Positions 1 to 59,000 of a DNA stretch of 64,000 nt are shown in pieces. The notes beneath the pieces were generated by a model. It was not told the origin of the DNA. It did not search any database and worked only from the letters and a program-made list of their open reading frames with translations. The stretch covers positions 3,720,001-3,784,000 of the forward strand of contig JBLDXI010000015.1 in assembly GCA_047495785.1 (NCBI GenBank), given 5' to 3'. Source of the stretch: Lepidodermella squamata. Taxonomy: Eukaryota > Animalia > Gastrotricha. Position 1 is the stretch's first letter. Each line of letters starts with the position of its first letter. Position numbers and translations under genes: made by a program.

Positions 1-2200
1 CACACGGCTGAGAGACATGTACTTCAAAACCTGCTTTTTCTTTTGGAAAGAAAACAGGAGAACCGCAACCAAATGGTAGACGGTGCAGCCGAAGCACAGC
101 CACGTCAGGTATTTAACGTATTCGCTTAGTAAAATCCTTGTTTTAGTTTTCGGAACCAAATCTAACACGGCGGACTGGGTAACTGTCAGGGTTAGCAGAA
201 TAGTCACAGAGAAGCAAGACCTATCAGCGAGCTGAGGTGGCATCAAGAATGCGGTCAGGTCCAATATCCCCAAGACAAAAGTCGGCACCATCAAGTTGTT
301 GAAATAATAGTCGGGAATACGAGAAAGGGTTACAGTGAATCTAGCGACGGAAACATCCGCTCCTCGGAAACGAGTCTGGTCCAAGGTCTGGTTTTTGAAT
401 ACGAACCGCCACTCCGTTGTCTCATCCGCCTCTGACCAAAGGAATTGAGGATTAGTGAAAAGAAGCAAGTCAGTCGACCGTTGTAGGGTGAACGTCAACT
501 CGCAATTTTGCGTGTCGAATGGAAAGTTACTTAGCTCAAGTTGACATGTCGATGAGTAGAGGCCCTCTGATGTCCAAATGAACTCAAACGTACGATTGCC
601 TTTTGGATTGCCGACATTTTTCATTGAGACTGTCAGATCATCGCTGAAGTACCCGCCACCTCTGTATATGTCTGACGAAGCACTGCTGACATATCGAAGC
701 CCAGGTACCCAAATGTCTTGACGGGAGGAGACATAGACCAAGTCGTAGGCGGTTGTCGGAATCACGTCCGAACTACTCTCTGGGCACGTTGAAACCTGCC
801 ACTTGAGAAGAATAATCCCAAGAACGTTCATCGCTTCATTCACAGTATCGATTTCAGCTAGTCGATGTATCTGGAATGCGATCAAGATCGGGATTGGTTT
901 ATCGTAGACAGGAGGGGCGATTCTCAGGGCTTGGAAATCGCTGCATCTCGTCATGACATTTTCGGTCGTTTCTTTAGCGGGCGAAGTTTGCTTCGGGTAG
1001 CATTTTGGAATCAAGTCTTCTATGACTTTTGGCGGTTTGGTGTTCTCACATCCTTCCAGAGTAAGAACGGGCCGGGTAGTAGTTGGTGTCGACGCGGTTG
1101 TAGTTGTTGTCGTTGTTGTTGTCGTAGTTGTCGATGTTGTCGTAGCTTTCATAAAAAGAAGTATCTCATATTTATTAGTAATTTCTCCGCTGTTGTTTAG
1201 CTTACGAGAGATGCATGTAATAGCTACCGCCATTTCGACATGAAGCTTGCAGGTGTCATGATTGGGGGAGTAATTTCCGCATGTTGCGATATCCGGTTCG
1301 TTCCCAGTAGAACACACGACGTCATCGAGCAAGACAACAGGCTTATCCATGCGGCTTGGAGCAAGACTGTTATCAATAGGTACACCATCACTGCGAATAA
1401 AATCAAATTATTAGAAAATTTCTTGAACACAAATTGAGAATATACGGATATCCGAGCGCTTTGCATACTGCTTTAGCTGCCTTGTCATTGAAGTTCGGAT
1501 TATCGTTGCAAATTACACCCCAAATCCTGTCACTAGCAAGATAGTATTCGAGAATTCCTGAAGACCCATTGCCGTATATACGGTACTTTGAGCTTGGATT
1601 TCCTGTGAAGAATACTTGATATCTTACACCTCTAACTTCTTTTCGCAATACCTTGTTCGCAGGGAGGAGCATCCCCGCAGCAAACGGCAGCCACTTGATT
1701 GACTGTGCTGCAGTATAGGTAGCCGGTAATTTTATCCCCTGCGCAGGTAGCAATGTCCGCTTCGCTTCCAGTTTGACAAATCACGTCATTCAGCATAAAT
1801 GGCAGAGGTGATGTCGGTCTATCAACCCAAGCGTACTTGTTCAGCAAACTTCTTCCAGTGCTGTAAAACGGAAGTTCTTTTAATTCTACCATGATGAATT
1901 AATGGCAACTATAATCTCACGAGTGCCCAAGAGCTCGACAGGCTGCCTTGGCAGCTAAATCGTTGAAGTTCGGATTATCGTCACAAATGTATGTCCATCT
2001 ATTATTCGGGGTGTCGTAGTACTCGAGGAGGCCGAAATTTTGGCCACCTGTTATCCGATACAATGGTGAGGCTGCGTCTCCTCCTGTTTCATAAATATGC
2101 GTTCATTTGCACATTAAGAATTTAGATTTTGCTTCTCATCCTCACCTGTCGATAAGTAAGCAATACATAGAATCAATAGCATCACGAAACATTTAAGCAT
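1..2200 (-). CDS. SRCR-SRCR-polyThr-Cys-loop ligand-gated ion channel fusion, copy 1 (multi-exon; 3' end runs off the window)
   Basis: Signal-peptide exon MLKCFVMLLILCIAYLSTG (ATG 2200). SRCR exons read YRITGGQNFGLLEYY..RWTYICDDNPNF.. and YRIYGNGSSGILEYY..WGVICNDNPNFNDKAAKAVCKALGY. Phase-1 intron 1146-1205 joins ..TCIS to PTTTST.. and then to an open channel exon nearly identical to 6632-7854, including the Cys-loop CQLELSNFPFDTQNC. Confidence 0.85.
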
Positions 2201-3706: not shown

Positions 3707-6186
3707 CACTCTTAGCCATATCACGGGTAAAGTGTAAAGAAAAATCACGCATCACGCAGGCGTGACGGCTAGAAACGGCATTGAGCCGTGGTTACTCGTT
3801 ACTTGTCACGTATTTTGGCGACTAAAATTGTCTATTCTCAGCTATCCGTTGCAAGCCGTCATATTTCTTTACAATCGAACGGCTTGTCTACGCATCACGG
3901 GTAAAAGGAGCGTTACTTGCCGTTAGAAGCCGTCTCTATCCGTTGCTTGCTATTTTCCAAAATCACGGCTACAAAACGCGTTACTTGCCGTCACTCATAA
4001 TTTATTATTCGTTACATAGCGTGAGCAAGCCATTAGAAGGCGTTACGGGCTAATATTATCCATATAGGGTACCAATCCACCTTGAAACCTGGTGCCAAGA
4101 CTGCTACCCGCTGACCTTGAGACATGAAAGTCGAAACTTCCAAGTCTCAGAAGTAACAGGTAGCAGCCCTGAAACCAGATTTCAAGGAGATTGGTACCCT
4201 ATATGGATAATATTAGCCCGAAACGCCTTCTAATGGCTTGCTCACGTAGAATTGACAAGACATTTTCAACATAATTAGAGTAATTTAGACATTTGAGAAA
4301 GAGTCATCTTAGCACAACATCAAGCACAAACAGCACAACATCAAAAGTTAGACTTAACTTGTCATAATTTGGTTCACGTAGAAACACCGCCTTGACCTCG
4401 CCCAGCACCAAGACCAGAGCCACCGCCGCCCGCCTCCTCTGCCATGACGTCTTGTTTAGGACGACTCGGCCGGGTCGGACCAGTTGTCACTAAAAATAAG
4501 TATTTAAATATTTATTTAATTTCGGAAGAGTTGTCGCTGTACGAGTTGACATTTCACCAATATTTTAGCTATACTCCGGGCCAGTATTAGTTCCATACGG
4601 CCCCCAAGCGTCAGTTGCGCAATTGGAGGGTAAACGCTCTAAATTCGTTTGCTCTAATTTCGTTTGCTCTTATTTCGTTGCTCAAAAGCCCTTGCTCAAT
4701 TTTCGTTGCTCAGTTTTCGTTTGCTCAATTGACATAGAACTACACAAAGAACAAAATGAAAAATAATATTTTAAACGTAAATGCGATACTTTTGAAATAT
4801 ATTTTTAAAATTGAACCATTCAAGGAAATATTCATGGAAATATGAATACTTCTATTTTGAAAATGTTGAAAATTTGGTAAACCTTATTATTACAAAAACT
4901 AGTGAAAATTATTGAAAATTCAAATTGCAACCTTTCCTTCAAGTAAAGGCCTCGACGTCAATTGGCTAGGCCCGGCCTGACTTGCTTCCGGAATCGGAGG
5001 CTGGTTTGACGCCGGCTGCAGAATTGGTAGATGAGACGGCTCTTGAGACGGCGCTTGAGGTGGAAGTTTGATACGGTCCGAGGCTTGAAGTGAGTGACCC
5101 AGCAGGTTGTAGTTGGGAACAGCCATTGCTTGGCCCTTTGGGTTGTAGTTGATAGGTGCCACCACCTGGCCATGCGGGTTGCCGTAATTTTGAACAGCCA
5201 TAAACTGAATCTGAGTAGTTGATTCATGAGCAAGCATCGCCTGTTGCCCATGCCCAATGTAACCCACGTCGATTGACGCGCGCCATACAGCCCACTCGAT
5301 CCATGCGCGTGATCGCCGGAGAACGACGGCATCAACGGTTGTTGAAATGACTGGGCTGCTCATTTGACTGCCCTGAATTCGCTTGCAGCTACACATTTAT
5401 AAACTATATTTTTATAAAACACATTATCAGATAAATTACCTGAGGAGTGTTAGACATCCCAAGCAGAAGAGAAATGATGTTGATAATTCGAATAAATCAA
5501 GAAATGAATTCAAACCTTTTTCAAACTCAAATTGTTTGATGAGACGACACTTTGACGCTCTAAAAACGTTGGGCAAAACTTGAAGTTAGCTCATTACTGA
5601 GACGTAATTAGCCTGCTATAGTTAACGAGGCAGTCATTACGAGCAATCAATACAACTCAATCGACCAAATGAAACGCAATGATAAAAATGATTTAGAAAT
5701 TTCAACTCCAACGGAGTCAAGAGTCAAGTCATCAAAAAACAAACTTCTCGAAAAATTGAAGTTTTATTTGTGTATGAAAACAAGTCAAATGAATGAAGGC
5801 AGTGTGTCTTGCCTTATCAGGTTACGCAACATGTGGTGTAAATTAGCTTTCGTGACGCGTTGATGACAGATAAATAAGGTTTTGCCGTTTTTTTCCGTCG
5901 CTCGTCACGCAGACAGTAATTTTGCTGTTATATCGCATAAAAAAGCCGTGACAAATGCCGTAGACATGCCGTTACGCATTTTTTGGGCGACGGGGCTGTC
6001 GGGCCTAAGGGACTTTGTGATGGCTGGAGACGGCTAGTAACAGCAGTTGACGGCTAGTGGGTCGCCGACCTGAAAAAAAATCCACGGCTAATCACGGCTA
6101 AATCACGGCTAAACCCGTTACAAGCCGTTACATGCCGTAGGATTGTTAAAGGAGAGGTGTCGCAAGCCGTGATTTGGCTCAGTGTG
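3707..6186. mobile_element. Non-autonomous CAC-terminated (CMC/EnSpm-like) DNA transposon
   Basis: Imperfect 20-bp TIRs: CACTCTTAGCCATATCACGG (3707-3726) and CCGTGATTTGGCTCAGTGTG (6167-6186). Many subterminal ACGGCT/AGCCGT repeats at both ends. C-runs on both flanks are compatible with a short TSD. No transposase ORF. Confidence 0.65.
4020..4246. repeat. ~227-bp near-perfect palindrome/foldback inside the CMC-like element
   Basis: CGTGAGCAAGCCATTAGAAGGCG..TAATATTATCCATATAGGGTACCAATC.. is mirrored by ..GATTGGTACCCTATATGGATAATATTAG..CGCCTTCTAATGGCTTGCTCACG. Confidence 0.85.
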
Positions 6187-6631
6187 CCCCGTTCTGGAAC
6201 CCCGAGCGAGTTTGGCGCAGCCAAACGAATCGAGGGGTTTCAGACTACGTTCTCTATGAGGGATGTAACCCCATGGGGACCAAATGGTTTGTTGATGAAT
6301 CGAAAACCAAGTAAAAAATGTTCGATTATTTACTTTCCAAGCGTCACAAGAAATCCAAATTGTAGATGTTTATCAAAAATAAACTAGACCCCAGTAGTTT
6401 CTACATTATTTCACAAACAAAATCACGAAGTTACGCGTGCCAAGGTACAATACAACAAATTAATAGAAGATTCTTTGCCATAGCACTTTTACAGATTCAA
6501 ACACTATTCTGCGAATCCACCGAAATACCAATTAATCAAGCTTTCAAACGACAAGCAAATGGTACCGGGGCACCATATTATTTACATTGTCAACTGTCAA
6601 GAAGTTTACATCTACGAGAATGGACGATCAT

Positions 6632-8893
6632 TCAAATCAGCTTTGCCATTGACGCGATGTAAACATGAATTGCAATAAAACCCGCAATACCAAGAGCGAG
6701 TAGTGCCAAATCGAGCAGACGGCTGATAGACATGTACTTCAAAACCTGCTTTTTCTTATGGAAAGAGAATAGGAGAACCGCAACCAAATGGTAGACGGTG
6801 CAGCCGAAACACAGCCACGTCAGATATTTAACGTATTCGCTGAGTAAAATCCGTGTTTTAGTTTTCGGAACCAGATCCAACACGTCAGATTGGGTAACTG
6901 TCAGGGTTAGCAGAATAGTCACAGAGAAGCAAGACCTATCAGCGAGTTGAGGTGGCATCAAGAAGGCGGTCAGATCCAATATCCCCAAGACAAAAGTCGG
7001 AACCATCAAGTTGTTGAAATAATAGTCGGGAATGCGAGAAAGGGTTACAGTGAATCTGACAACGGAAACATCCGCTCCTCGGAAACGAGTCTGGTCCAAG
7101 GTCTGGTTTTTCGATACGAACCGCCACTCCGTTGTCTCATCCGCCTCTGACCATAGAAACTGGGGATTTGTGAAAACAAGCAAATCAGTCGAACGTTGTA
7201 GGGTGAACGTCAACTCGCAATTCTGCGTGTCGAATGGAAAGTTACTTAGCTCAAGTTGACAGGTCGATGAGTAGAGGCCCTCTGATGTCCAAATGAATTC
7301 GAACGTGCGATTGCCTTTTGGATTGCCGACATTTTTCATTGAGACTGTCAGATCATCGCCGAAGTTCCCGCCAATTCTGTATATGTCTGACGATGCACTG
7401 CTGACATATCGCAGCCCAGGCACCCAAATGTCTTGACGGGAGGAGACATAGACCAGATCGTAGGCAGTCGTCGGAATCACGTCCGAACTACTCTCTGGGC
7501 ATGTTGACACCTGCCACTTGAGAAGAATAATCCCAAGAACGTTCATCGCTTCATTTACAGTGTCGATTCCAGCTAGGCGATGGATCTGAAATGCGATCAG
7601 GATCGGGATGGGTTTGTCGTAGACAGGAGGGGCGATTCTCAGGGCTTGGAAATCGCTGCATCTCGTCATGACGTTTTCGCTCGTTTCCTTAGCGGGTGAA
7701 GTTTGCTTCGGGTAGCATTTCGGAATCAAGTCTTCTATGCGTTTTGGTGGATTCTTATCTTCACATCCTTCCAGTGTAAGAACAGGCCTGGTGGTAGTTG
7801 GGGTCGACGTAGTCGTCGTAGTTGTCGAAGTGGTTGTAGTTGTTGTCGTCGTAGCTTTCATAAAAGAAAAATCATCTCATATGAAATTCTCCGGTGCTGT
7901 TCAACTTACGCGGGATGCAATTTACAGCTGCAGCCAAGTCCACACGAGTCTGGCAGACGGGGTGATTGGGAGAGGGATTGCCGCATAATGTGATATCCTC
8001 TACGTTCTCTGCAGGGCATACAACATTATCGTACAAGTAAACGGCCTTGTTCATGCGGGCTGTAGGGAGATTGTTTGCCATTGCAGTACCACCACTGCGA
8101 AAATACAAAATATATACATCCTCACGGACAAAATTTGTTAAAAAATTACATGTATCCAAGCGATTTGCATGCAGCTTGTGCGGCATTGTCATTAAAGTTC
8201 GGATCATCGTTGCAAATCAAACCCCAAATCCTGTCAGCAGCTCGATAGTATTCGAGAATTCCTGAAGACCCATTGCCATAAATACGGTACTTGTTGATTG
8301 GGGTTCCTGTGGAGAATTATATGATCCTAGAAGGCTTTACCATATCACAGGGTGTACCTTGTTCGCAGGGATGATCGTTGCCGCAGCAAACCGCGGCTGC
8401 TTGGTCTATATTGCTGCAAGCTAGCGCACCGTTCTTGTTCGCCCACGGTCCACAAGTTGCTATATCCGTTTCTTTGCCAGTTTGGCAAAGGATATCATTC
8501 AGCAAAAACGGTTTATCAACCACTGCTGGTCTATCAACCCATGCGTACTTGTTCAGCAAAGTCTTTCCAGTTCTGTGAAAAGCCATTTATCTATATCTTA
8601 ATGGAAATTTCAACGATATTTTTACGTGTATCCAAGTGATCGACAAGCCGCTTCGGAAGCTAAATCGTTGAAGTTAAAATTGTCGTCACAAACGTAGGTC
8701 CATCTATTATTAGGTGTGTCGTAGTACTCGAGAAGGCCGAAATTTTGGCCACCTGTTATTCGATACAATGGTGAGGCCGCATTCCCTCCTGTCAGGAAGA
8801 TTTCTCATCAAAGATTCACTTATTAATTGTTTTCTTACCGATGGATAAATGGGCAACAGATAGAATTAATATTTCGAAGTCTAACTTGGCCAT
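6632..8893 (-). CDS. SRCR-SRCR-polyThr-Cys-loop ligand-gated ion channel fusion, copy 2 (complete, 6 exons)
   Basis: Exon 1 (8893-8839) MAKLDFEILILSVAHLSIG is a signal peptide. Four exons encode two SRCR domains (WTYVCDDNFNF..AACRSLGY; WGLICNDDPNF..AACKSLGY). Phase-1 intron 7855-7909 leads to the terminal exon 7854-6632: poly-Thr, IWVP, Cys-loop CQLELSNFPFDTQNC, EW, SRIPDYYFNNLMVP (M1), DRSCFSVTILLTLTV (M2), then M3 and M4. Confidence 0.9.
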
Positions 8894-9449: not shown

Positions 9450-11059
9450 ATGTCAAAAGACCCAGAGCGTTTCCCAAGCGGCCTTGTTATTATATTCATT
9501 TGCTTCCTGTTCGGGACAATCGCACTGATCTCCCAAATTCTGCCATTTAGTCTAAAAAATGATATTTTCAGCGGCAGTCGTACTTCGTTTCGGACGCAAA
9601 ATTCATCTTCCTTAAAGGATGCTGGAAAAGCGGAGTTTAGGTTCAAGCCGATCGGGTACTCGACCTACGACTTCACAATGCAGGGTATTCATTACGCGGA
9701 AAGTATTTGTGCAGGCGACGCATTTTTGGACTACGAGTCCGAGGCCGAAGTAACGTCATCAGTGCTATTCGAATTCTCGCCTTTGGTCAACGATCACGTG
9801 ATGCTGATGTTTGCCGACCATGTCCGCAATGAAACTTGGCTCGATAACGCGCACACATTCCCCATGCAAATCAGCTGTCATCCGGACGGAGCTTACCTCA
9901 CCTGTGCACTTCGAACTTGGCTGAGATTAACGCAGTGGGTTGGGTCGGTCTTTCCGGTTCGTAATCGTTTCCAAGACAGTTCGATGTATGTCCTGCAGCT
10001 GGACAGCGATTTGAAACCGGTTAGGAAATCCAAGCACTTTCTCGGGATCCCGACACCGGTTCAAGATTCTGAATATACTGGCCCAGAAGATCCGAGAATT
10101 GTCGCGATTAATGGATCGCTTTACATGAATTTCCTTATTGGTTACAACTATGGAATGGGAACAGGGACGAAAAGGTAGGTCGAAAAGGCGAATAACTTAT
10201 TGAAAATAATATCCTAAAATATTAGGCGGCAATTTCTATGGTCATTGGACGAAAGCGTTCTATACACTATTCGAGCGGATAATCTGAGAGACAGGCCGTC
10301 AGAAAAAAATTGGGCACCATGGGTCACCGAAAATAACGTTCTTCGCTTTGTCTACCAATTTCTACCGGTAATGAGAGTGATGGAATGCGATTTTTTACCA
10401 GAATTACCCGAACAATCTCGAGCTGTACATTGCAAATTCATCGCCGGCGATACTGGACAGATTGAGACTGCCGGATTTGTGCTACGAGGGGGTTCGCCTA
10501 TTGTTCATTACAAGGACGAATATTACATAACGCTGACGCATTCTGTATCACATTCAGGTGGCAGAAGTATGTTTCACCATTTCGATTGAGAGTCTTCTAT
10601 AAAAATGACGTTTGTTTAGAATATGCTGCTCAAATTACCCTGATGAACATGAAAGACTTTCGGGTTGTTTTCATCTCATCGCCAATCTTGATCAACCCAG
10701 ACATAATGCGAAGTACAAAAACGACAGATCCTGGTATAGTCAGACCGTTTCTATATGCTCGAAGCATTTTCCTGGAATCCAAGGACAGCTTGGTCATGAG
10801 TGCAGGCTTAAATGACAACCACAGCTTCCTCATCAGATTGCAGGGATTCTCTCTTCTCTTGGGTATGAAATTTATAAAATCATTTTTATCGAAAATTAAA
10901 GTTTGTTTATTTCAAGAAAATGCAATGATTATCGATCGAAATGTCTCGGCTTGTAGAGAAAAGCTGGAGTTGGCGGCGAATGCGTTTGAGACTGCGTTGA
11001 CAAGAGTTAACGACAATATCTTGGATAATTTATTTCCTTTAAATGCTCCTCCAGCTTGA
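9450..11059 (+). CDS. Type II membrane GT91/BMT-like (GH130-fold propeller) protein, paralog 1 (4 exons)
   Basis: N-terminal TM anchor; motifs GPEDPRIVAINGSLYMNF, EKNWAPW and LRGGSP. Short introns at ~10175-10225, ~10568-10618 and ~10863-10916. Ends NAPPA*. Confidence 0.75.
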
Positions 11060-31349: not shown

Positions 31350-31577
31350 TTATATCTCAAAAATTTAAAATCTCGAATTTACGCCACTTGATTATTGGTG
31401 ATGATAAATGAGATATTGTTCCTGTCACTTGCCTCGCAAGCAAAAGGTTCATGGTTGTTGATTGTTGTGTTGGCCCTGGCGATGGTTTAAATAAACGGAA
31501 ACTAGTTGGCAGTCGCGCAAGGCGTCCGGTTAATTCGATCAGAAAAAAATAATGTACAAGCGCAAAAAAGTTGCAAT

Positions 31578-31651
31578 TGCCCCCTGTGAGGATCGAACTC
31601 ACGACCTCCAGATTATGAGACTGGCGCTCTAGCCAACTGAGCCAAGGAGGC
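31578..31651 (-). tRNA. tRNA-Met(CAT), elongator
   Basis: GCCTCCTTGGCTCAGTTGGCTAGAGCGCCAGTCTCATAATCTGGAGGTCGTGAGTTCGATCCTCACAGGGGGCA folds as a cloverleaf and is followed by an oligo-T terminator. Confidence 0.95.
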
Positions 31652-31721
31652 AGTTGTAATTGTTAATGAAACCATTTGTTACGGAATCGATTCATTTTAA
31701 TTTGAAAATTTTGAAAAATTC

Positions 31722-31795
31722 AGGTTCCGGCGGGGTTCGAACCCGCGACCTTCTGCGTGTAAAGCAGACGTGATGAACCACTACACAACGGAACC
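31722..31795 (-). tRNA. tRNA-Val(TAC)
   Basis: GGTTCCGTTGTGTAGTGGTTCATCACGTCTGCTTTACACGCAGAAGGTCGCGGGTTCGAACCCCGCCGGAACCT. Confidence 0.95.
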
Positions 31796-31974
31796 TGCCT
31801 GAATCCTCTAAACTTCCTGGAGCTTTGAACCAATTTCCAGTTTAAATATCTAAAAAGGTGCAATCTTCCAGCATATTTATTTTTTATAAAATTCGAGCTG
31901 GAATCACAAAGGGAATTATGCTAACACGAAGCAAAAACAGGCCCTAACATCGTACTTGGTAAAACCCAGAAACT

Positions 31975-35968: not shown

Positions 35969-36907
35969 CCGTCAGTTGGGGCAATCTGGGTCATTGGGGC
36001 TATTCGGACGAATGTTCATGCAAACGGGAGAATGAGCATGGCTCCAAAACTACCCGGCCGTTAGCTATGAAATTTTGCACCGAGTTAGGTGGAAAGACGA
36101 CCCACATGCCATAAATATTTCATGACCTGAGAGTAAGTGGTTGTGAAGATATGGGCTTACCTTTCAGGTGTAAGTTTAACTCAGTTTAAGCACTGTTCTG
36201 CGTTGAATTACCTGGACCAGATGAGAATTTTGCTGGACCTGCGATCAATTTTTTCTGAATCTACAGATGATAAGGCACCCATGAAAATTTAAACCGCCCC
36301 GATCCGACTCATACTTTTGTCTAATTAATTGCGTCCTTTTAGCCCCACGGAAAAATGATGTCGTGGGGCTATTCGGTCTGCCATTTGAATATGCTAATGA
36401 ACTGCGTTGTTCAAACGTTCCTGGCTGATTAAAGCGGACTTTTACTTCATTTACAATTTAATTTTTGAATAAGCTGGAAAGACTGCAAAATACTAGTTTA
36501 CTGGCCTACGACATAGCCAATTACTTAATTACGACTATAATTGACAAATAATTCAACTAAAAATCAGTGTTTTAGCTTGCTCAAATTCTTGGGCATAAAA
36601 ATAATAATAAAAAAAATTTTGCGGAAAAAAATTGCTCCGCGGCGTGGACTCGAACCCTTGTTTCGTACTTTGCCATGCTTTTTAGAAGCATATCCAAAGC
36701 CACTCGACCACTGAACACAGCATATTAGCAATATTTGAATTGAATATTTATGTATAATTAATAGCCCCACACCTGTCCGAATAGCCCCATCCGTGGGGCT
36801 ATTCGGAATCCTGGTTCCATTGGAACCAGGATCTTCTGAAACGTGTAAAAATGCAAAAAAATCAGGGGGTAATTTTTTTTCGCCGTCCGGATAGCCCCAA
36901 CTGACGG
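35969..36907. mobile_element. Non-autonomous Tc1/mariner/pogo-type element
   Basis: TIRs CCGTCAGTTGGGGC(A/T)ATC; TA TSD on both sides; internal GGGGCTATTCGG repeats. Absent from the homologous RTK upstream region near 28990. Confidence 0.82.
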
Positions 36908-40532: not shown

Positions 40533-43500
40533 TCATGCAAAAAGGAGGAGGCTAAAAAATTTGGAGTATTGCGCCAACGAGCAGAACAAGCAAATGCCTA
40601 ACATACGGCTTTTCCGCGCCTCTTCATCGCCGAACATGGCTTTCACTAGATTTGACAGTTTGAACGGGTGCATTAAAATTCGCTTCGAGTCGTAGGCCTC
40701 CCACGGCGACAGCCGGCCCTCGCCTGTCGTCATCGTATTGTCACCGCTGTCGTCTATAAAACCGGTAGTCAGCGGGTCGAAGCACGAGAAAACTGTTGGG
40801 ACGGCGATTTCTTGGAACACCCTGTGACGAGACGCCAGTTCGAACATTGCGAGAGCTTCGGTGAAATCGTGTTTCGCGACGTAAAACATGTCTGAATAAC
40901 CGGTTAGAACTCGGAAAGAACCGCGGGCGCGTGTAGAAATTCGCTCCAAACAGCGCCCGTAAACATCGCTTGAACTGTTTGTGGCTTTATGCACCAGAGA
41001 CTGGATAAACAAAAAATAAGCTCGTCAAAAAGGGTAAAAAAAAACTGCAATTGCCCCCTGTGAGGATCGAACTCACGACCTCCAGATTATGAGACTGGCG
41101 CTCTAGCCAACTGAGCCAAGGAGGCAGTTGTAATTGCTAATGAAACCATTTTACAGAATTGATCAATTTAAATTTGAAAATTTTGAAAAAAATCAGGTTC
41201 CGGCGGGGTTCGAACCCGCGACCTTCTGCGTGTAAAGCAGACGTGATGAACCACTACACAACGGAACCTGCCTGAATCCTCTGACCTTTCTTGAGCTTCT
41301 AACCAATTTTCAAGTTTGAATATTTAAAAAAGGGTGCAACTTTTCATGCATATTACTTTATTGAATTCGAGCTGGAATCATTAGGAAAATTCCAGATGAC
41401 TAGATTTCTGTTAACTAGAAAAGACGGGCGCGCGTACCGCGCGCCTCGTAACATGTACGCTGCAATGCTTCCATGCCAAGGAACTTAATAATAAAGCGGA
41501 TTCGAAAATAACTTGAAACGAAACACATTAAAGCCAATGGATTGTTGGTACTTGTAAGACACCGTTCAGATGACGGTTCTAAACTTATGAATGTCACTCA
41601 AGTTACCCATTCTTCATTTCACATTACATTATCTCACTGAATAGAATTTATGCAAAGATATCGAAGATTGAATCTCATCGTCTTTAAACAGCTATCTCTC
41701 ACAGAACTAATGCAAAACTAATGATAAGCTCTCAGTGTCTATCGTCTATCAATTTGAACTGACATCTCCCTTCTCAGTGGACCTAAAATATTAAGCTTTA
41801 AGATATAAGTAAGAAATATCAAGTTAACATCCGACATCAGACATGAAAATCTGCTGCTTGACCATAAGACCTGCATGAGTTGGAGCTAAAGGCTAAAGCT
41901 CAGCTGATCTGTATGCTGAAAAGATGAGCCCGGCATGAATTTGAGCGATAGGTAGGTATCTTAATCACAATTTAGATCATTTGCTATAGATGATTCTAAC
42001 ATCCTAAAGATTCATATGCATCTCAGTATAGTATCTTTCCGGGGAAGATTAAGTTAACATGAGTCGATCATATCATCTATATCTGGGAGTTAAGATTGAG
42101 TAGGATTGAGACTTACAACTCCAGTCTCCATCTCAATGAAAAGAAGATGTTAGGATTTGAGATCCTACTACTATTATGCATCTTGATGTTGATGTTGTGC
42201 AATGATATACGACATTCATCTAAGTTAAGTAAGTTAAGTTGACTCCATTCATAGATCCATAGATCCTTACTCGACGTACTCTGAATGTGATCTGAGTGAG
42301 ATCTAACTTGAGATCAAAGTATGTTACTTAGCAACCATAGATCCATACTCAATGTTGATGTTGTGGATTGACATAGATCTACATTGAGATTGAGTTAAGT
42401 AGATCTACTTATTCTTAAGAATGAGGTAGGTTGAGGTTAAGCTCTAAGTTGATCTAACTGGAGATTAGACTTATATGTTAGTTAGCATCTATATATGTAA
42501 TGTTCATATACTCAAGCATTAACAGATCTCAGCGAAAGATGTATCTAAAGCAAATGAATGTCCTATTGATCGTGATTCACGAACATCTTTCAGTCAGACA
42601 CCGAACATCAATAAGCGCAGAAGTTAACTGCGCGCTGGTTAACTTGAAACTCGCGCGCCCCCTTAAAACCGCGTCAATTTAGTTTTCAACCTGAATTATT
42701 TAAAAATTTGATTGTTAGTAATTTTAAAGTAAAATAAAAATTATAGAATTATTTTTATTTAAAATTAACGCGTATTTAAAAAGTTTATCCGAGTTCTCTT
42801 ACGTTCTTTATGTTGTTAATATCAAGCAAAAACAGGCCCTAAAATCGTACTAAGTAAAATACCGAAACTCGACCAAAGCCTATCTCTAACCCTAACCCTA
42901 ACCCTAACCCTAACCCTAACCTTAACGATAAGGCCTAACCTAGCCCAAATCTGTACCCGAACCCGAACCCTGACACCTAAACCAAACCTCTAACTCCTAT
43001 TCCAAATCATTGTTTTAAAACAAAATTATATAAAAGAAATATTTATGAAAGGTTAAAAAACAAATTCGAGATGAAGATTGGGTTTTAATTCAATAATTAA
43101 TTCAATTTTCACTGTAGCTTGGAAAATAAAATGAACGAGGTTCCGGCGGGGTTCGAACCCGCGACCTTCTGCGTGTAAAGCAGACGTGATGAACCACTAC
43201 ACAACGGAACCTGCCTGGAACCTCTGACCTTTCTTGAGCTTTTAACCATCTTTCCAGTTTGATTATTCAAAAAAATTGGAGATGCCGGGGTTTGAACCCG
43301 GGACATCTTACATGCAAAGCAAGCGCTCTACCACTGAGCTACATCCCCAGACGATATCAGAGGCTTCAATTCAACAATTAATTCAAATTTCACCGTAGCT
43401 TGGAAAACAAATTGAACGAGGTTCCGGCGGGGTTCGAACCCGCGACCTTCTCCGTGTGAAGGAGACGTGATAACCACTACACTACGGAACCTGTCTCTAA

Positions 43501-47997: not shown

Positions 47998-50900
47998 TTA
48001 TAACGCTTCTGTTTCTGTGGTAGAATGGGCACCTTCAGTCGCCCGATGGTCAGCAAAAACATCCGGAGGAGGGCTTATCGAAACAGTCGTGACTTCTGGA
48101 ACGGCTGTTACTGGTAGATCATTGGCGTTATCAGTAATCGGTGGGACAACTGGCCTCGGCAGGGTGTCTATATGCGGAGATGGCGCCAACATCTCTTCTT
48201 CACCAGTTTTCTTCAACGGCGCTGAAACTGGTCGAGTTTTACCGCTAGATGAAGGCTTCTTTGCATTACCGTTTGCTTTGACGGAAGTAGATGGCGCCTT
48301 TTTCTGTTTCTTAGCCACGTTACCTTTGGGCAGAGGTGCTACAACAACCGGATCGCCACTTGAAGACAACGATTCTGAAACTGTAGTAACTGAGTTCGAA
48401 CTTCGCATATGCCCAGCTCCACGGCCTTGAGGAGGCCCAGCGTTTTGCAGGACTGGCCGAAACGATGCCCGGCGAAAAACTTGATTAATAGTTGAACGAT
48501 TAGGCCTGAAGCTGGCATGCCTTGCCGGGGTGTGAACCGCGCAAACGTGAACAAATAGTGCCATAATTGCAATCACGGCTATTCCGATCAGCATAACAGC
48601 CCACCAGTACTTCTCCACCCATTCGCGTATACTTGACATGGATGAGTCGGAGAAGGGCCCATCTTTCAGCCGAGATAGCGAAGCGTCGGTATTAGCTGAC
48701 CTGCATTTCCGAAAAACATCGCAGTAGCCGAGGTCGTTATCACACGGAGCTCCGGCCATTAGTTGAATAGGTTGGCCTTTGTTTGTCATGTTCAAAAAGG
48801 CTTTGAATCTCGGCTCGAAGTCTCGAACTTTCAGTATATTCAGGGAGTTGTGGCAGATTCCAGTATCTGGGGCGCGGCAAGCTAGGAAGCAAAGTTCGGA
48901 ACGGTTGACGTTTGACCCGTCGCCGACACGCTCTGGTTGGCACCCGGTATAGCTCAGGCCGCGAGTTTCATCGATTATCAATTCGCAGCTCGAAACTGAG
49001 CATTCACCTGATCGGCACATTTTCGTCATTTCGCCGCATAATTTACCATCGGGTTCCGGCGATCCTTTCGGGCAGGCTGCACCTTTCCCACTATAATAGA
49101 AAAAATTACGGGTTTTTTGAGTGTGAATTTGAGCGGAAACTTACTCGCAAGTTGCGCTTTTGAAGCAATCGCCAGCTTGTCGGCAAACGTACCGGCTCGC
49201 CTCGGTTCGAAATGAGCAAGTTCTAACGTCGCAACAGGCTCCGTTGCTCAAGCTGCACTGAACAGCTTTCGAGCTCACATTTCGGCCGCCAACTGTTTTT
49301 CGGAGTTTGCAACGCGCCATTGGGTTCGGGTCGTCGGCCGGACCGCAGCAGTTAGCATCTGGGCCGCAATCGTCGCCGAAACCACAGTCGCACTCTTCAC
49401 CAGGGTCGACAATGGAATTTCCGCAAAACTGAACCGAAGCTAATAAAAATTCGAACAATTTTAGAAATAGGTCTAAATAGTGATAAAAATAAAATTGGGG
49501 TTCCAGCACCAAATTTGAGTGACTAGGCGCTATCATTTCCTTAACGATTTCGGCCTTTTTTCTTGATATCAAGCGTGCCCCAGAGTTGCGCAACTATTCT
49601 TTGATTTGGCAGCTTTTTGTTTGAAATTCAACTCCTTTTATTGGATTAAAGAGACTGAAAGAATGTTCCATCTTTTAAAAGCGATTTAACCGAAGAAATT
49701 ATTTTTTTTACCGGAGAATAATTGGAAACCCCGAAACCCCGAAACCCCGAAAACCCGGAAACTGGTTCGGTAACTTTCGGTATTTTACCCCGTTATCCCC
49801 GGAATTTTTTAATTCCATTAACTAACATACTTGATGGCTATTCTCGTGATTTTTGAATTTTTCCTAAATTTTCTGGCCATGAGAAATGACTTCGTCTCTC
49901 ATTTTAGAGATTCTGAACCTTTTCCGTGCCCTTGCCTGCATTACTTAGGGGACACGCTGTAATTTAGTACTGGAACCCTAAAATTTTAACGTGTGCACAT
50001 ATGAAATTTCGGTAAAACAAACCTTTCAAGCAATTGAGCGAGGTTGGGTTGGTGATAATTTGCTTCAAATTTTTCGCTATCGAATCCCGGCTGCAGTAAC
50101 TGAACTTTTGATTATTCGGCTTTTCGCCCGTATTCGCTGATGAGTACATGATATAATTTCCCTGACTTCCACCCGGGTAGCATTGCGGATCTGCAATCTG
50201 ACCCTCCGCAGCCGTATTGTCGTGTTGAGCACCGAACGAGTGTCCCAACTCGTGGGCGAATGTTGTAGCTGAGACCAGCCTATTGACTATTTCGCCATAA
50301 TTTAATTGCGTGATAATACCGGCATTTAGCGACTGCAGCCCATAGCGGGTCGGGCCGAATCTGTCGCAAATACCGCCTCGTTGAATCATATCAGGGTAGT
50401 GGATCCAAGCCAGGCCGAGCACTCCGTTCGAAAAATCGCGAAGGGTGAATAAAAACGACACGCAATACAGGTCGTAATTAACGCGTGAAACCAGGTTCAA
50501 AAACGCAGTCGGGTCCAGGTTGGTAATTTGTTCCGCGGGGCGAACTTGGAAAGCTCGCGCGAATTCGGATTCTGTCTGGTAGATTTTCGTGCGAACTACC
50601 GCCATTTGAACGTTGCGATACGGCCCAGCTGTGATTCCATCAGCAGATGAAAAATTTGTGCTCAGATAAATAGCATTCGTAGTTCGAGTGACAAAATCAA
50701 GGTAGGACATAATATTAGCAACGGCCATGTTCTAAAAATAAATAAATAAATAAAAAAGGCCACCTTAATAAATAAAAAACTCACATCTGATTTCGTTTCT
50801 TGGTAAAATTTTTCATAAAGCAAATGATCGACTTGCATGAAGACCCCGCATACTTTTGGGACAGCTAAAGGATTGCTAATTAGCATCACAGGCTCAGATG

Positions 50901-55372: not shown

Positions 55373-56043
55373 TTTAAACTCTAACTAAACACAAAAACAA
55401 ACACCTGATTGAAAAACTTTCTGATTTTTTTTAATATTTACAAAAACCTGTTGTGAACAACACGAACGAGCAAGAGACAATTCGCATGTAACAACAACAA
55501 TAAGTGTTACATGAGTACGATTAAATAATAATAATAATAGGTTAAATAATATATCGGCAATAGCTCTCAAGACGCAATTAATATAGCAAATACAAGAAGA
55601 GTCAGATGAAGGTTGTGAAGGCAGACATAAAACCGTTATAACACGCGGTTGAAGACACCCGCTAGTCATAAGCTAGTTACAATAGGTATGCTTCAACGGC
55701 TCATTTCGAAAACAAATAGTTGAGTCTCTAAATGGAAATACAATCGTAGTAAAAATGACTTGATTATTCGCGTCTATCAATGCCATCATCATACAGCCTT
55801 TCGCCGATCAAATTCTTTTCTTTAATTTATATCAACCTAAATTAACCAAACCCGGCGAAGAAGAAGAAATATAATATATGCGAAGGTACACTATAACAAT
55901 AAACTACGAAAAGCGCTTGTCGTTGACTGAAGTTCCAGTGATTTTTTATTCTTGTGCGTCTCAAGTGAAAATGCATCCAACAGTTTGATGATGAGAAGTT
56001 AGGACCGATCATGGCTGCGAGTTCCAAATCACAGTGCGCGCTC

Positions 56044-59000
56044 TCAGTAAGGTCTCGGCCGTCCATCGCCACGACCCCTGTAACACACAACAAATTATTC
56101 AAAATCTCAGTGGATTTTTAGGGTAGCTTACCGTCCGCGCATTGGGCCACCGCCGCCACCCCGAGGGCCTCCGCGATCACCCCCACGGTCGCCAAAACCA
56201 CCACGGCTGCCGCGAAAACCTGAGAAATCGGCTATTATAATCCGTTGAAAAATCAATTTCAAGCATTACCTCCTCGGCCTCCCCGGTCGCCGCCGCTGGG
56301 ATAGCCTCCACGATCGCCGCGGTCACCTCGTTGCTCGAAACCGCCACCTCCGCCGCCGCCCATTTCATCACCAACAACCTTGGCTGAGGGCGATTTCGGG
56401 GTCTTACACCGATTGCACTCGGTGCGAAATTTGAAGTTGTTATTGCCGCACTGTGTGCAAATCCAGTCGCCGGGTTTCATACCGCCAGGAGGCGCGCCGG
56501 GTCCGCCAGGTCCACTCGGTCCGCCTCGATCACCCCCACGACCGCGCGAGCCTCCCCGGGGTCCGCCGTAACCACCCCGGTCACCGCGATCACCATAGCC
56601 ACCTTAAAAAAGTATTGAAATTATTAACAAATTCTAGTCAAATTTGACGTGTTCTCACTCTCACCTGGACCGCCGCTACCACCACGACCCCCGCCGCCAT
56701 ACGGAGGAGGGCCTTGGTTGTAGTACGAGCCCGGTCCACCGGAGCCTGGGGGCGGCCCATAATTGCCAGGAGGGCCCCGAGATTGAGGCGGTCCGCCGTA
56801 GCCACCGCCATTGCCCTGCTGACCGCCGTAGTGACCACCGCCATAGCCACCCTGCGGGGGAGGGATCGGCCCAGGCGGGCCACCAGACGACTTGCTGCCC
56901 ATACCAGGCGCAGATCCATAGTCCTTCGGCTTACGAGCGCCTTCAACGTGCAGAGTCGAGCCACGGAGTTGAGTTCCATTCATCCATTGAACTGCGCATT
57001 GGGCTGAGCTGGTATTTTCGAAAACGATCAGAGCATCACCCTTAGCACGGCCTGTCTTCTTATCGCGGTAGATGGTGACTGCAGGTTGGCAGGTGACGGG
57101 GTCAAACTTGATGGTACCAGCTCGTGCGAAAAACTGGGCCAGTTCCACCTCTGTCGCATCGAGTGGGATGTTTGTGATGTAGACAGCTTCGTTATCGACG
57201 GGGTTGCCTTGCGGGGGACCAGACGAGCCGTTACCAGACTGTGAGCTGCCAGAAGCTGGTGGGACAGGAGCAGGCGCGGAACCTATTATTCATTCCGCGA
57301 ATAGAGAACACAGAATTAGCTGTGGTAAAACCTTTTACTAAACCCTTCGTTTACTCATCTAAAACACTCTCGTTTAACCCATATGGGACACACCCTTCAA
57401 GTATAGATCAATAACCATATAACAAGGTGGCGATAACTCCCAATTCTATCGAATTGAACCATTTAATACCGGAATATTTTTGTTTTGTATCCGTATGTTG
57501 TCGTGAACCCAGCGGTTTTTACAGTATATATCAGTGGAATTCGTGACCCAAATTGATTAAGGAGGATCATTTAATGAATACCCGGCGCACACGTGTTTAT
57601 TACTAGGCAATATGTTACTTGTTTCAACGTACCATAACTCGAACCACCAGAATAATTTGAAGCCGACGTCGCTCCGCTAAACACGTTGTCGAAGAAAATG
57701 AACACAAGTTGTTAATTTCGGACGAAACAGTCTCGATTCGGTGATAGGTAGTATTGTGTGTTATGACATGTGATTGCTTCACATTCCCTAAAACAAGTCC
57801 CCGCTGGCCTGCTTTTACTCATGGCCGCGATCTCTGGTCTTGAAAACACCTCACGTCAAGGCTAATTTCAGCTTTCAAAATATAAACAGTCATTTAAATA
57901 GGTAAATAACCAAAACCAAGCTGAGCTACCGCTTGTTATCAGATTTGCTGTGCTTTCCGTTAATTATGTGGTGTAACTTGGATAGATGAAAGCTTTCAAC
58001 ACAACATGTAAATTCAAGAAAAGGAGTCGAGAAAACCAAAATACACAGTCATCATGATACAAGTCACATTGCAGGTAGTTCCGTTTGATTCGAAACGGCA
58101 ATCCGATTGGTTACACGTAAGGCTGAAACGTTGTAATTAGACTCGATACTCCAAAACCTGGCTTTTGTATAGCAGTTTCGTAGTTCGTTGTTCAAAAAAA
58201 TAATTAGACAATCGGAAAATATATTACATGCATAATTGAAGAACATATTACATCCAAGTCGTTAAGCCTGTGCACTTGTACAACTAACTCTTCAGCTAAA
58301 CATCATTAAATTAAGAGATATGAGCCGAACATAAGAATTGTCAATGACGCATGTCTCGCCAATTATTATCCTGTCATGAAACTTAATCAATTAATCACAA
58401 GTTTACATAGATTATCAAACCGGTAAGCCCAAAGTCTATAGTGTAAACTTTGGACTGGGCTAACACACCAGGTTCTGGTGAAGTGAGGTTAATGTCATGT
58501 TGTTTTCTAGCTTCTAGCAAATACTTGGTTTTTAATAATGAAACATTAATTCTGCGGTTTCCTAATAAACTATACACATAATTTCAATAAAACCTCACTT
58601 CACTTAACGGGGTGCCGAACTCTAACGTTGATTCTTTTGAAACCGAAATAAACTATGACGCGATAAGTTGAGTTGTTAACATGCCAAAGATTGAAGCAAA
58701 ACAGCCAAGCGTCAACTGAATGTTGGGATCGTTAGGACAATATTTCATCTCTTTAAAACCATGAGGCAAAAGGATCATAAAAAATTGCTTTGCGGAAAAC
58801 CGAGGCAACATAAAAAACCGAGGTGTAGGAGATTTGAGCAAAGTTATACGTATAGCGCGCATCATATAGCGATAACTCCGGGAAAAATTTACACAAAGTA
58901 ACTGGAGTAACAACTAGAGCATATCGATATACCGAACAAACACAGTGCTAATCCAGATCCGTGATCGTAAAAATACTCAGAAAATAAAAATTACGTCAAT

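Follow-up and report, generated by a model that had tools for sequence, protein, structure and literature searches.

Can an ion channel of the neurotransmitter-receptor type carry, within one polypeptide, extracellular domains of the kind used in innate immune recognition? This question is raised by a locus in a stretch of 64,000 nucleotides (nt) from the gastrotrich Lepidodermella squamata (assembly GCA_047495785.1, contig JBLDXI010000015.1, positions 3,720,001 to 3,784,000), the whole of which is called the window here and supplies the coordinates used below. Cys-loop receptors are textbook receptors for small-molecule neurotransmitters, with a mature chain that starts at the ligand-binding domain (LBD). 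At this locus a gene on the minus strand, gene A, places two scavenger receptor cysteine-rich (SRCR)-type domains and a threonine-rich stalk ahead of such a channel, and a tandem paralog, gene B, lies at the start of the window. Judging from the sequence, gene A in all likelihood encodes a single fused polypeptide composed of a signal peptide, two SRCR domains, a stalk and a Cys-loop channel.

Gene A was rebuilt from the raw window sequence as six exons on the minus strand (8893-6632), with a product of 665 amino acids that has no internal stop. Its introns (8838-8789, 8625-8573, 8357-8307, 8149-8095 and 7909-7855) are all GT-AG and 50-55 nt in length, all five have pyrimidine-rich 3' ends, and their phases are, in order, 1, 2, 1, 2, 1. 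The parts of the gene are as follows, with the basis of each assignment (E, expectation value).

8839..8893, minus strand: exon 1, start codon (first in-frame ATG of the open frame) and signal peptide (MAKLDFEILILSVAHLSIG), phase 1 end
8626..8788, minus strand: exon 2, N-terminal half of SRCR-like domain 1 (…RITGGQNFGLLEYYDTPNNRWTYVCDD…AACRSLGY), phase 2 end; Pfam SRCR_2 E 4.6e-5, SRCR E 2e-3
8358..8572, minus strand: exon 3, C-terminal half of SRCR-like domain 1, phase 1 end; weak SR-A match (E 0.11) and Cys spacing
8150..8306, minus strand: exon 4, N-terminal half of SRCR-like domain 2, phase 2 end; Pfam SRCR_2 E 2.5e-5 and PDB matches
8095..8149, minus strand: intron 4, 55 nt, GT-AG; no other intron was found spliced out in a contig
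7910..8094, minus strand: exon 5, C-terminal half of SRCR-like domain 2, phase 1 end; assigned by position, Cys spacing and alignment with exon 3, with no sequence match of its own
7855..7909, minus strand: intron 5, 55 nt, GT-AG, phase 1, the head-to-channel junction; its retention leads to a stop
7854..6632, minus strand: exon 6, stalk and channel, from the gene model
7784..7854, minus strand: Thr-rich stalk P258-P282, from composition
7682..7783, minus strand: family-specific segment before the LBD, with C289 and C305 (alignment A1)
7034..7681, minus strand: Cys-loop receptor extracellular (ligand-binding) domain, from Pfam, AlphaFold and Foldseek
6647..7027, minus strand: transmembrane domain (TMD), M1-M4, from the AlphaFold helices and the M2 alignment
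6632..6634, minus strand: stop codon, from the sequence

Across intron 5 the junction reads ...NCIP-P-TTTT. When the channel open reading frame (ORF) is read alone, its first ATG (7861) falls within intron 5 and gives a product starting MKATTTT..., without a signal peptide or hydrophobic leader. The first-pass annotation of this DNA had proposed a single spliced frame running from signal peptide through two SRCR domains and a stalk to the channel, joined by a phase-1 intron at 7855-7909, with a channel ORF lacking a signal peptide of its own, and the rebuilt gene bears it out on each of these points. The two SRCR-like modules measure 378 and 342 nt and are both split internally after LGY at phase 2; since introns 1, 3 and 5 are all phase 1, each module forms a symmetric 1-1 unit.

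The assignment of the heads begins with their N-terminal halves. Those of both gene A domains and of the paralog matched Pfam SRCR_2 or SRCR with E of 2.5e-5 to 2e-3 over profile positions 3-46, half-domain scores that all lie below the Pfam cut-offs, as the head exons were submitted one exon each. Against PDB the N-halves matched SRCR proteins exclusively (PIT54 at 1e-6, CD163, TMPRSS2, MARCO, SR-A and CD5L), and the best PDB match of exon 4, the N-half of domain 2, was 1.2e-6. For exon 3, the C-half of domain 1, there was a weak match (E 0.11) to SR-A at the corresponding place, in its SRCR domain's C-terminal half (residues 77-116 of 117), and no lectin, pentaxin or LDLa match was found by Pfam in the head exons. 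The cysteine spacing of canonical group-A SRCR domains is established knowledge and was used for comparison. In both domains of both paralogs the N-half has the pattern C…x14…C and the C-half the pattern C-x10/11-C-x9/12-C-x9/12-C (alignment A3), exon 3 carrying two cysteines beyond the four spaced ones (CC…C), and the group-A six-Cys pattern is present in the gene A heads. From these matches and spacings it is highly probable that the head domains are SRCR, and likely that they are of group-A type.

It was previously established that residues D1019, D1020 and E1086 of DMBT1 are required for ligand binding in DMBT1, CD6 and CD163, and that the acidic cation-binding cluster of DMBT1 consists of D1019, D1020, D1058, D1059 and E1086, with D/E/N/Q substitutions accepted (PMC7043408). 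By-eye mapping from the sequence gives D, D, N, D, D at these positions in SRCR1, the equivalents of D1019, D1020 and E1086 being Asp, Asp and Asp, and N, D, D, N in SRCR2, with the last position uncertain.

The stalk that follows the heads (P258-P282) is 92% Thr/Ser/Pro and is likely a mucin-like, O-glycosylated spacer; it measures 25 residues, somewhat longer than the roughly 20 first estimated. Just downstream of the family-specific segment, among the first residues of the LBD, sits a family-wide cysteine, C324 (7660-7658), and the extra pair C324/C377 is common to the channel family (alignment A1). Within the family clade of that alignment C41 is nearly invariant and C94 invariant, and we infer that the family cysteines are paired by disulfides.

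The channel exon matched Pfam Neur_chan_LBD (PF02931) with E 2.5e-9 and 37.4 bits against a cut-off of 26. Its Cys-loop at 7217-7261, C457-QLELSNFPFDTQN-C471 (x13), encloses FPFD; in alignment A1 neither of its cysteines varies, nor do its Pro and its Asp. Residues 284-665 (a piece of 382 amino acids) were modelled with AlphaFold from a 21-row family alignment. The model reached a predicted local distance difference test (pLDDT) of 85 and a predicted template modelling score (pTM) of 0.76, and consists of a beta-sandwich of about ten strands followed by four long helices (H252-274, 280-303, 312-340 and 343-378 in the numbering of the piece). In Foldseek the model matched GlyR, the alpha-7 nicotinic acetylcholine receptor (nAChR), GABA-A, ACR-23, ELIC and GLIC, with E of about 1e-20 and a template modelling (TM) score of 0.72. 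By its modelled beta-sandwich and four transmembrane helices, together with the Cys-loop, gene A belongs to the pentameric ligand-gated ion channel (pLGIC) superfamily, and the complete Cys-loop channel subunit that had been claimed at the outset is recovered in the LBD scoring above the Pfam cut-off, the canonical Cys-loop and the four helices of the model.

The second transmembrane helix, M2, lies at 6872-6943 (…ADRSCFSVTILLTLTVTQSDVLD…) and reads A-D(-1')-R(0')-SCFSVTILL(9')TLTVTQSDVLD(20') when aligned with named nAChR-like and 5-HT3A sequences. An acidic -1' residue, Leu at 9' and an acidic 20' residue form the M2 pattern of cation-selective Cys-loop receptors. The Pro-Ala-Arg anion motif is absent from the M2 of gene A, which has the acidic -1' residue instead, and the pore-lining Asp/Glu at -1', Leu at 9' and acidic residue at 20' are kept across the channel family. 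From Asp -1', Leu 9' and Asp 20' the pore is predicted to be cation-selective. The loop between M3 and M4 is very short (~10 residues). In alignment A1, as we read it, the Trp position of loop B is not conserved in the gene A channel, and the channel should not be classed with the acetylcholine or serotonin receptors. Overall, a secreted-pathway, single-pass-head, four-transmembrane Cys-loop subunit with a cationic-type pore is strongly supported by these features, and we think that gene A probably encodes a functional cation channel.

A second copy of this arrangement is found in gene B.

1..2200, minus strand: gene B, tandem paralog with six exons, same exon structure as gene A
2200-2146, 2083-1921, 1860-1652, 1602-1446, 1390-1206 and 1145-1, minus strand: exons of gene B

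The last ~27 codons of gene B lie beyond the window start. Exons 1-5 measure 55/163/209/157/185 nt in gene B versus 55/163/215/157/185 nt in gene A, with identical phases, and the leader of gene B (MLKCFVMLLILCIAYLSTG) is stronger than that of gene A. The matching junction that had been reported for the paralog (intron 1146-1205) proved correct: intron 5 of gene B (1205-1146) has the same phase, is 60 nt long and is in frame and stop-free, so that the second SRCR half and the channel form one open frame even when unspliced. The two copies have diverged unevenly. Their head exons are at the nonsynonymous to synonymous rate ratio (dN/dS) of 0.33 with a synonymous divergence (dS) of 0.66, which marks them as constrained coding sequence, and the heads are 67% identical; the channel parts are 95% identical as proteins, with dN/dS 0.09 and dS 0.26, and the TMD has dN/dS 0.08. 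Nucleotide identity between the copies is 83-85% in exons 2 and 4 (85% in exon 2), 66-69% in exons 3 and 5, and 47-65% in the introns. The lower dS of the channel exon (0.26 versus 0.66 in the heads) suggests either gene conversion or homogenisation of the channel part, or its later and separate duplication.

Relatives of the channel were sought by an exhaustive HMMER search of 1.8 billion representatives. Twenty-five proteins scored under 1e-30. Identity to the nearest of them is 35-42%, and every one that was looked up comes from an environmental assembly. Many of the 25 have 200-725 residues ahead of the channel part within one called ORF, and since head, stalk and channel are thus encoded together in many relatives, the head-stalk-channel arrangement is a family trait. 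Head and channel share a single ORF in, among others, P0011, P0012, P0014-P0017, P0019, P0020, P0022 and P0027; in P0011, which was verified on two contigs, the channel begins at residue 301 of 702. The heads of these relatives are Laminin_G_3/ConA-like, EGF or unassigned and are followed by a Thr/Pro stalk, which stands ahead of the channel in P0010, P0011, P0015, P0020 and P0022 as well; no SRCR head was found among the channel relatives examined.

The nearest channel relative, P0010 (42% identity), is encoded on L003, an ENA metagenome contig. At L003:7270-9386 a ConA/LamG-like ORF with a signal peptide adjoins the P0010 stalk-channel ORF, and an intron at 7994-8049 (56 nt, GT-AG, phase 1) joins the LamG-like head and the channel in frame. 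Relative to the parts, this intron has the same position as intron 5 of gene A. As read from the contig, one head-stalk-channel gene was cut into two proteins by the environmental gene caller. A weak SRCR-like match (E 0.05) lies 3.5 kb downstream of the L003 channel gene. In the tree the SRCR-headed channels cluster with the LamG-headed ones (support 95/91). Headless members of the family occur too (P0001 and P0013), and stand-alone relatives such as P0001 begin with a hydrophobic leader. On another metagenome contig (L001:2843-5456) two headless members are found in tandem, 218 nt apart, one of them with its own signal peptide, from which it follows that stand-alone versions of the channel clade exist. 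A scan of JGI metagenomes gave channels of only 20-32% identity, with SRCR-like sequence near none of them. On sequence comparison, gene A is a member of a lineage-restricted family with a variable head, a mucin stalk and a constant channel, in which exon shuffling appears to have swapped the heads at the phase-1 intron just before the stalk-channel exon.

Two sequencing runs bear on the gene model. Run X2 is DNA-like, with contigs of up to 130 kb that span introns and flanks, and an X2 contig matches 7946-8706 without a difference. Run X1, labelled 'RNA?' with its library type guessed, is from a related organism, mostly 90-99% identical and fragmentary. Its contigs are confined to about 6500-8825, over the head and channel exons, with none in the flanks. 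One of them joins 8091 to 8150 via TCA, which is the exact removal of intron 4 (8095-8149), and one changed base in it matches gene B. In X1 the head exons are covered less deeply than the channel exon, as is expected because several 95%-identical channel exons pile up on the latter, whereas no such pile-up arises from the diverged heads. The loose ends seen at 7854 and 7815 were considered as signs of splicing and rejected, being present in the DNA run X2 too, and they reflect other paralogs; assembly artefacts seem to account for the many 'opposite strands' joints in X1.

That gene A is one gene is well supported by a frame open across five introns, a matching paralog, purifying selection on the heads and single-ORF relatives. 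As a whole, we lean towards the explanation that it is a single chimeric channel gene with shuffled heads, which serve as recognition modules acting on the channel. The signal peptide would be cleaved, leaving two SRCR domains, an O-glycosylated stalk, the family linker, the LBD and four transmembrane helices in one subunit, and five subunits would make a pentamer showing ten SRCR domains on extended O-glycosylated stalks. The SRCR heads would be recognition modules that evolve fast, their ligands probably being polyanions or macromolecules held at the conserved acidic site of SRCR domains in a cation-dependent way. Occupancy of the heads would gate or modulate a channel that otherwise does not vary, and the whole would be an ionotropic receptor of surface or chemosensory type. 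Diverging and exchangeable heads on a near-constant channel in tandem arrays are the pattern to be expected of a receptor repertoire with varied head ligands and a common channel output. The functional core of this proposal, that the heads are recognition modules whose binding alters channel activity, is put forward tentatively. Its most specific form, an ionotropic pattern-recognition receptor in which a microbial, prey or surface polyanion on the SRCR heads directly opens the cation pore, or in which force through a stiff glycosylated stalk does so, seems unlikely.

Several observations weigh against this explanation. The junction at 7855-7909 was not seen spliced in any read or contig of runs X1 and X2, X1 being from a related organism. 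Apart from the weak match of exon 3, the SRCR C-halves gave no significant match to Pfam or PDB, whether as single sequences or as a four-row C-half profile. The Pfam transmembrane match, Neur_chan_memb (PF02932), has an E of 0.02 and 15 bits against a cut-off of 28, and by our own reading of alignment A1 gene A keeps neither the aromatic residues of the agonist site nor the loop-C Cys pair. With respect to mechanism, a flexible stalk of 25 residues and a linker of ~50 residues are probably a poor lever from a binding event to the gate, the near-identical LBDs of the paralogs would fit equally well a common small ligand there, with the heads serving otherwise, and the headless relatives argue against direct gating by the heads, as does the strong conservation of the LBD itself. 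With so long and flexible a stalk, the direct coupling of SRCR recognition to ion flux that was suggested at the outset is less evident than it was made to seem.

The points on mechanism lead to the reading that the fused protein is real and that its heads tether the channel, cluster it or target it, with matrix, cuticle, glycocalyx or a partner cell as the destination, or that they concentrate a ligand nearby, while the pore is opened through its own LBD by a small soluble ligand, an ion or pH. The long flexible stalk and linker between head and channel are in keeping with it, as are an LBD 95% conserved between paralogs at dN/dS 0.09, which is what a conserved ligand of its own would lead one to expect, and the headless P0001 and P0013, in which the channel part presumably works alone. 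We nevertheless find it somewhat doubtful: heads that evolve fast and are swapped among quite different folds on close channels fit varied ligands better than a single fixed anchor, and the classic agonist-site residues are missing. The same atypical agonist site, with the minimal M3-M4 loop and the Pfam transmembrane match below cut-off, could instead be taken to mean that the fused protein does not conduct and is a pentameric scaffold or an adhesion or scavenger receptor, its Cys-loop body serving for oligomerisation and anchoring. Such a function is quite improbable given pore-lining positions that are family-wide those of conducting cation channels and a TMD dN/dS of 0.08. Minimal M3-M4 loops are found as well in bacterial channels such as GLIC and ELIC, which conduct. 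If the locus gave two separate adjoining products, one of them an SRCR protein that is small and secreted and the other a channel, a junction splice not observed directly and an X1 depth higher over the channel than over the head exons would both be natural, but the depth difference is expected from the paralog pile-up, and the two parts are only 55-60 nt apart, the 55 nt between the head and channel exons leaving no room for a promoter. Two products are also very improbable in view of the channel ORF that alone lacks a signal peptide, the gene B junction that is open in frame even if unspliced, the phase-1/phase-1 match kept in both paralogs, and the head and channel found in one ORF in relatives. 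Finally, the probability of a pseudogene or an assembly artefact is negligible: nothing specific speaks for it beyond a multi-copy channel region that could confuse an assembler, and both copies are intact, share the junction and evolve under constraint, while a DNA contig from an independent run is identical over 7946-8706.

The single chimeric channel gene to which we incline has partial counterparts among known systems. The view expressed at first, that no SRCR-pLGIC fusion had been described, stands for the SRCR combination itself, as SRCR and a Cys-loop channel in one protein were not found in the literature or databases searched, save in incidental Pfam lists; it does not extend to immune-domain Cys-loop chimeras, which were reported from lobster in 2021 (PMC8221624). 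In the American lobster genome 66 Cys-loop receptors with C-type lectin, pentaxin or LDLa domains were found (Polinski et al. 2021, Sci Adv, PMC8221624), some of the chimeric receptors being highly expressed in brain and antennules. The authors proposed that pattern recognition is coupled to ion flux and did not find such chimeras outside crustaceans; SRCR is not mentioned in their paper (PMC8221624). In both cases an immune-type extracellular domain, a Cys-loop LBD and a channel are joined in one predicted protein, at gene-model level, and the family is expanded and lineage-specific with a function that is predicted only. The heads differ (C-type lectin, pentaxin and LDLa versus SRCR in gene A), and the lobster paper, unlike the present analysis, gives no analysis of stalk, exon shuffling or divergence of head versus channel. 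Compared by published description, gene A resembles the lobster family in design. Arthropod clusters with LDLa, pentaxin or lectin domains and Neur_chan_LBD were also found in the ESM Atlas, and the SRCR combination was not among the nearest models there. The concept of an immune domain joined to a channel is already published; what is new here is a head of SRCR type, a stalk of mucin type, the logic of exon shuffling and the existence of relatives that belong to no named crustacean.

Closer in sequence are the environmental head-stalk-channel proteins (P0010 on L003, P0011, P0014, P0016, P0027 and others), which resemble gene A in their Thr/Pro stalk, in a short loop between M3 and M4 and in the pair of cysteines typical of the family, and in which the intron, where present, is phase 1 and precedes the stalk exon. 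They differ in having ConA/LamG-like, EGF or unassigned heads, never SRCR, and they are undescribed in the literature. The cationic Cys-loop receptors (nAChR alpha-7/alpha-10-like and 5-HT3A) are the best named relatives of the channel, with the same fold and an M2 with an acidic -1' and Leu 9', but identity is 19-31%, and gene A is without the aromatic box, the loop-C Cys pair and the long M3-M4 loop, and has extra N-terminal modules. Its head N-halves match SRCR receptors (DMBT1/SALSA, MARCO, SR-A, CD163, CD5L, TMPRSS2) and nothing else; its heads have the group-A six cysteines and, judged by eye, may keep part of the acidic cluster. These receptors, however, signal by endocytosis, proteolysis or agglutination, and none is joined to an ion channel. 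The N-terminal domains of the prokaryotic channel DeCLIC pack on its extracellular domain, rather than hang on a mucin stalk. DeCLIC is bacterial, without the eukaryotic Cys-loop, and its extra domains are of an unrelated type. The likeness lies in an additional N-terminal extracellular module, which in DeCLIC and other prokaryotic pLGICs modulates gating, and DeCLIC is the only pLGIC with extra domains whose structure has been solved (PMC9897478). Additional N-terminal domains are not dealt with in a further paper on pLGICs (Jaiteh et al. 2016, PMC4795631).

Around the two genes, a divergent neighbouring gene starts about 550 nt from the gene A start codon and occupies 9450-11059 and onward on the plus strand, and between genes A and B lies a Pro/Gln-rich open frame of 158 amino acids without a Pfam match (4920-5396, minus strand). 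Elsewhere in the window seven tRNA genes are found on the minus strand in three small clusters (31577-31796, 41051-41269 and 43137-43491). Two of the clusters are a Met(CAT)-Val(TAC) pair each; the two pairs score equally and are separated by about 9.5 kb, suggesting a segmental duplication. Val(TAC)-Ala(TGC)-Val(CAC) make up the remaining one. An Rfam match to the TwoAYGGAY RNA at 36713-36861 on the minus strand (44.6 bits against a gathering score of 43, E 6e-4) is probably due to chance, as that family is described from bacteria and metagenomes and the genome is that of an animal. An ADAM10-like gene was mapped to 47998-50728 on the minus strand, with the reprolysin metalloprotease domain in one ORF (E 8.5e-25) and the Cys-rich domain of ADAM10 in the next (E 9.4e-14). 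A local GC peak of 0.52, versus about 0.41 elsewhere, spans 56001-58000 and contains an ORF at 56624-57148 on the minus strand.

The family to which gene A belongs hangs interchangeable macromolecule-binding heads by a mucin stalk over a nearly constant channel. Its gene structure, in which the modules are symmetric at phase 1 and an intron ahead of the stalk exon is shared, offers a concrete exon-shuffling mechanism for the diversification of such a family. Taken with the lobster chimeras, this suggests that the coupling of innate-immune-type modules to fast channels arose more than once, or is wider than the published picture of a trait confined to crustaceans. As the SRCR fold has been well studied in recognition, and its ligand classes and binding site are known, the hypothesis is directly testable. 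In the less likely case that the heads open the pore directly, the protein would be an ionotropic pattern-recognition receptor in which recognition is turned into a millisecond electrical signal without a second messenger, and the tandem paralogs, with their diverging heads and homogenised channel, would make up a repertoire of detectors.

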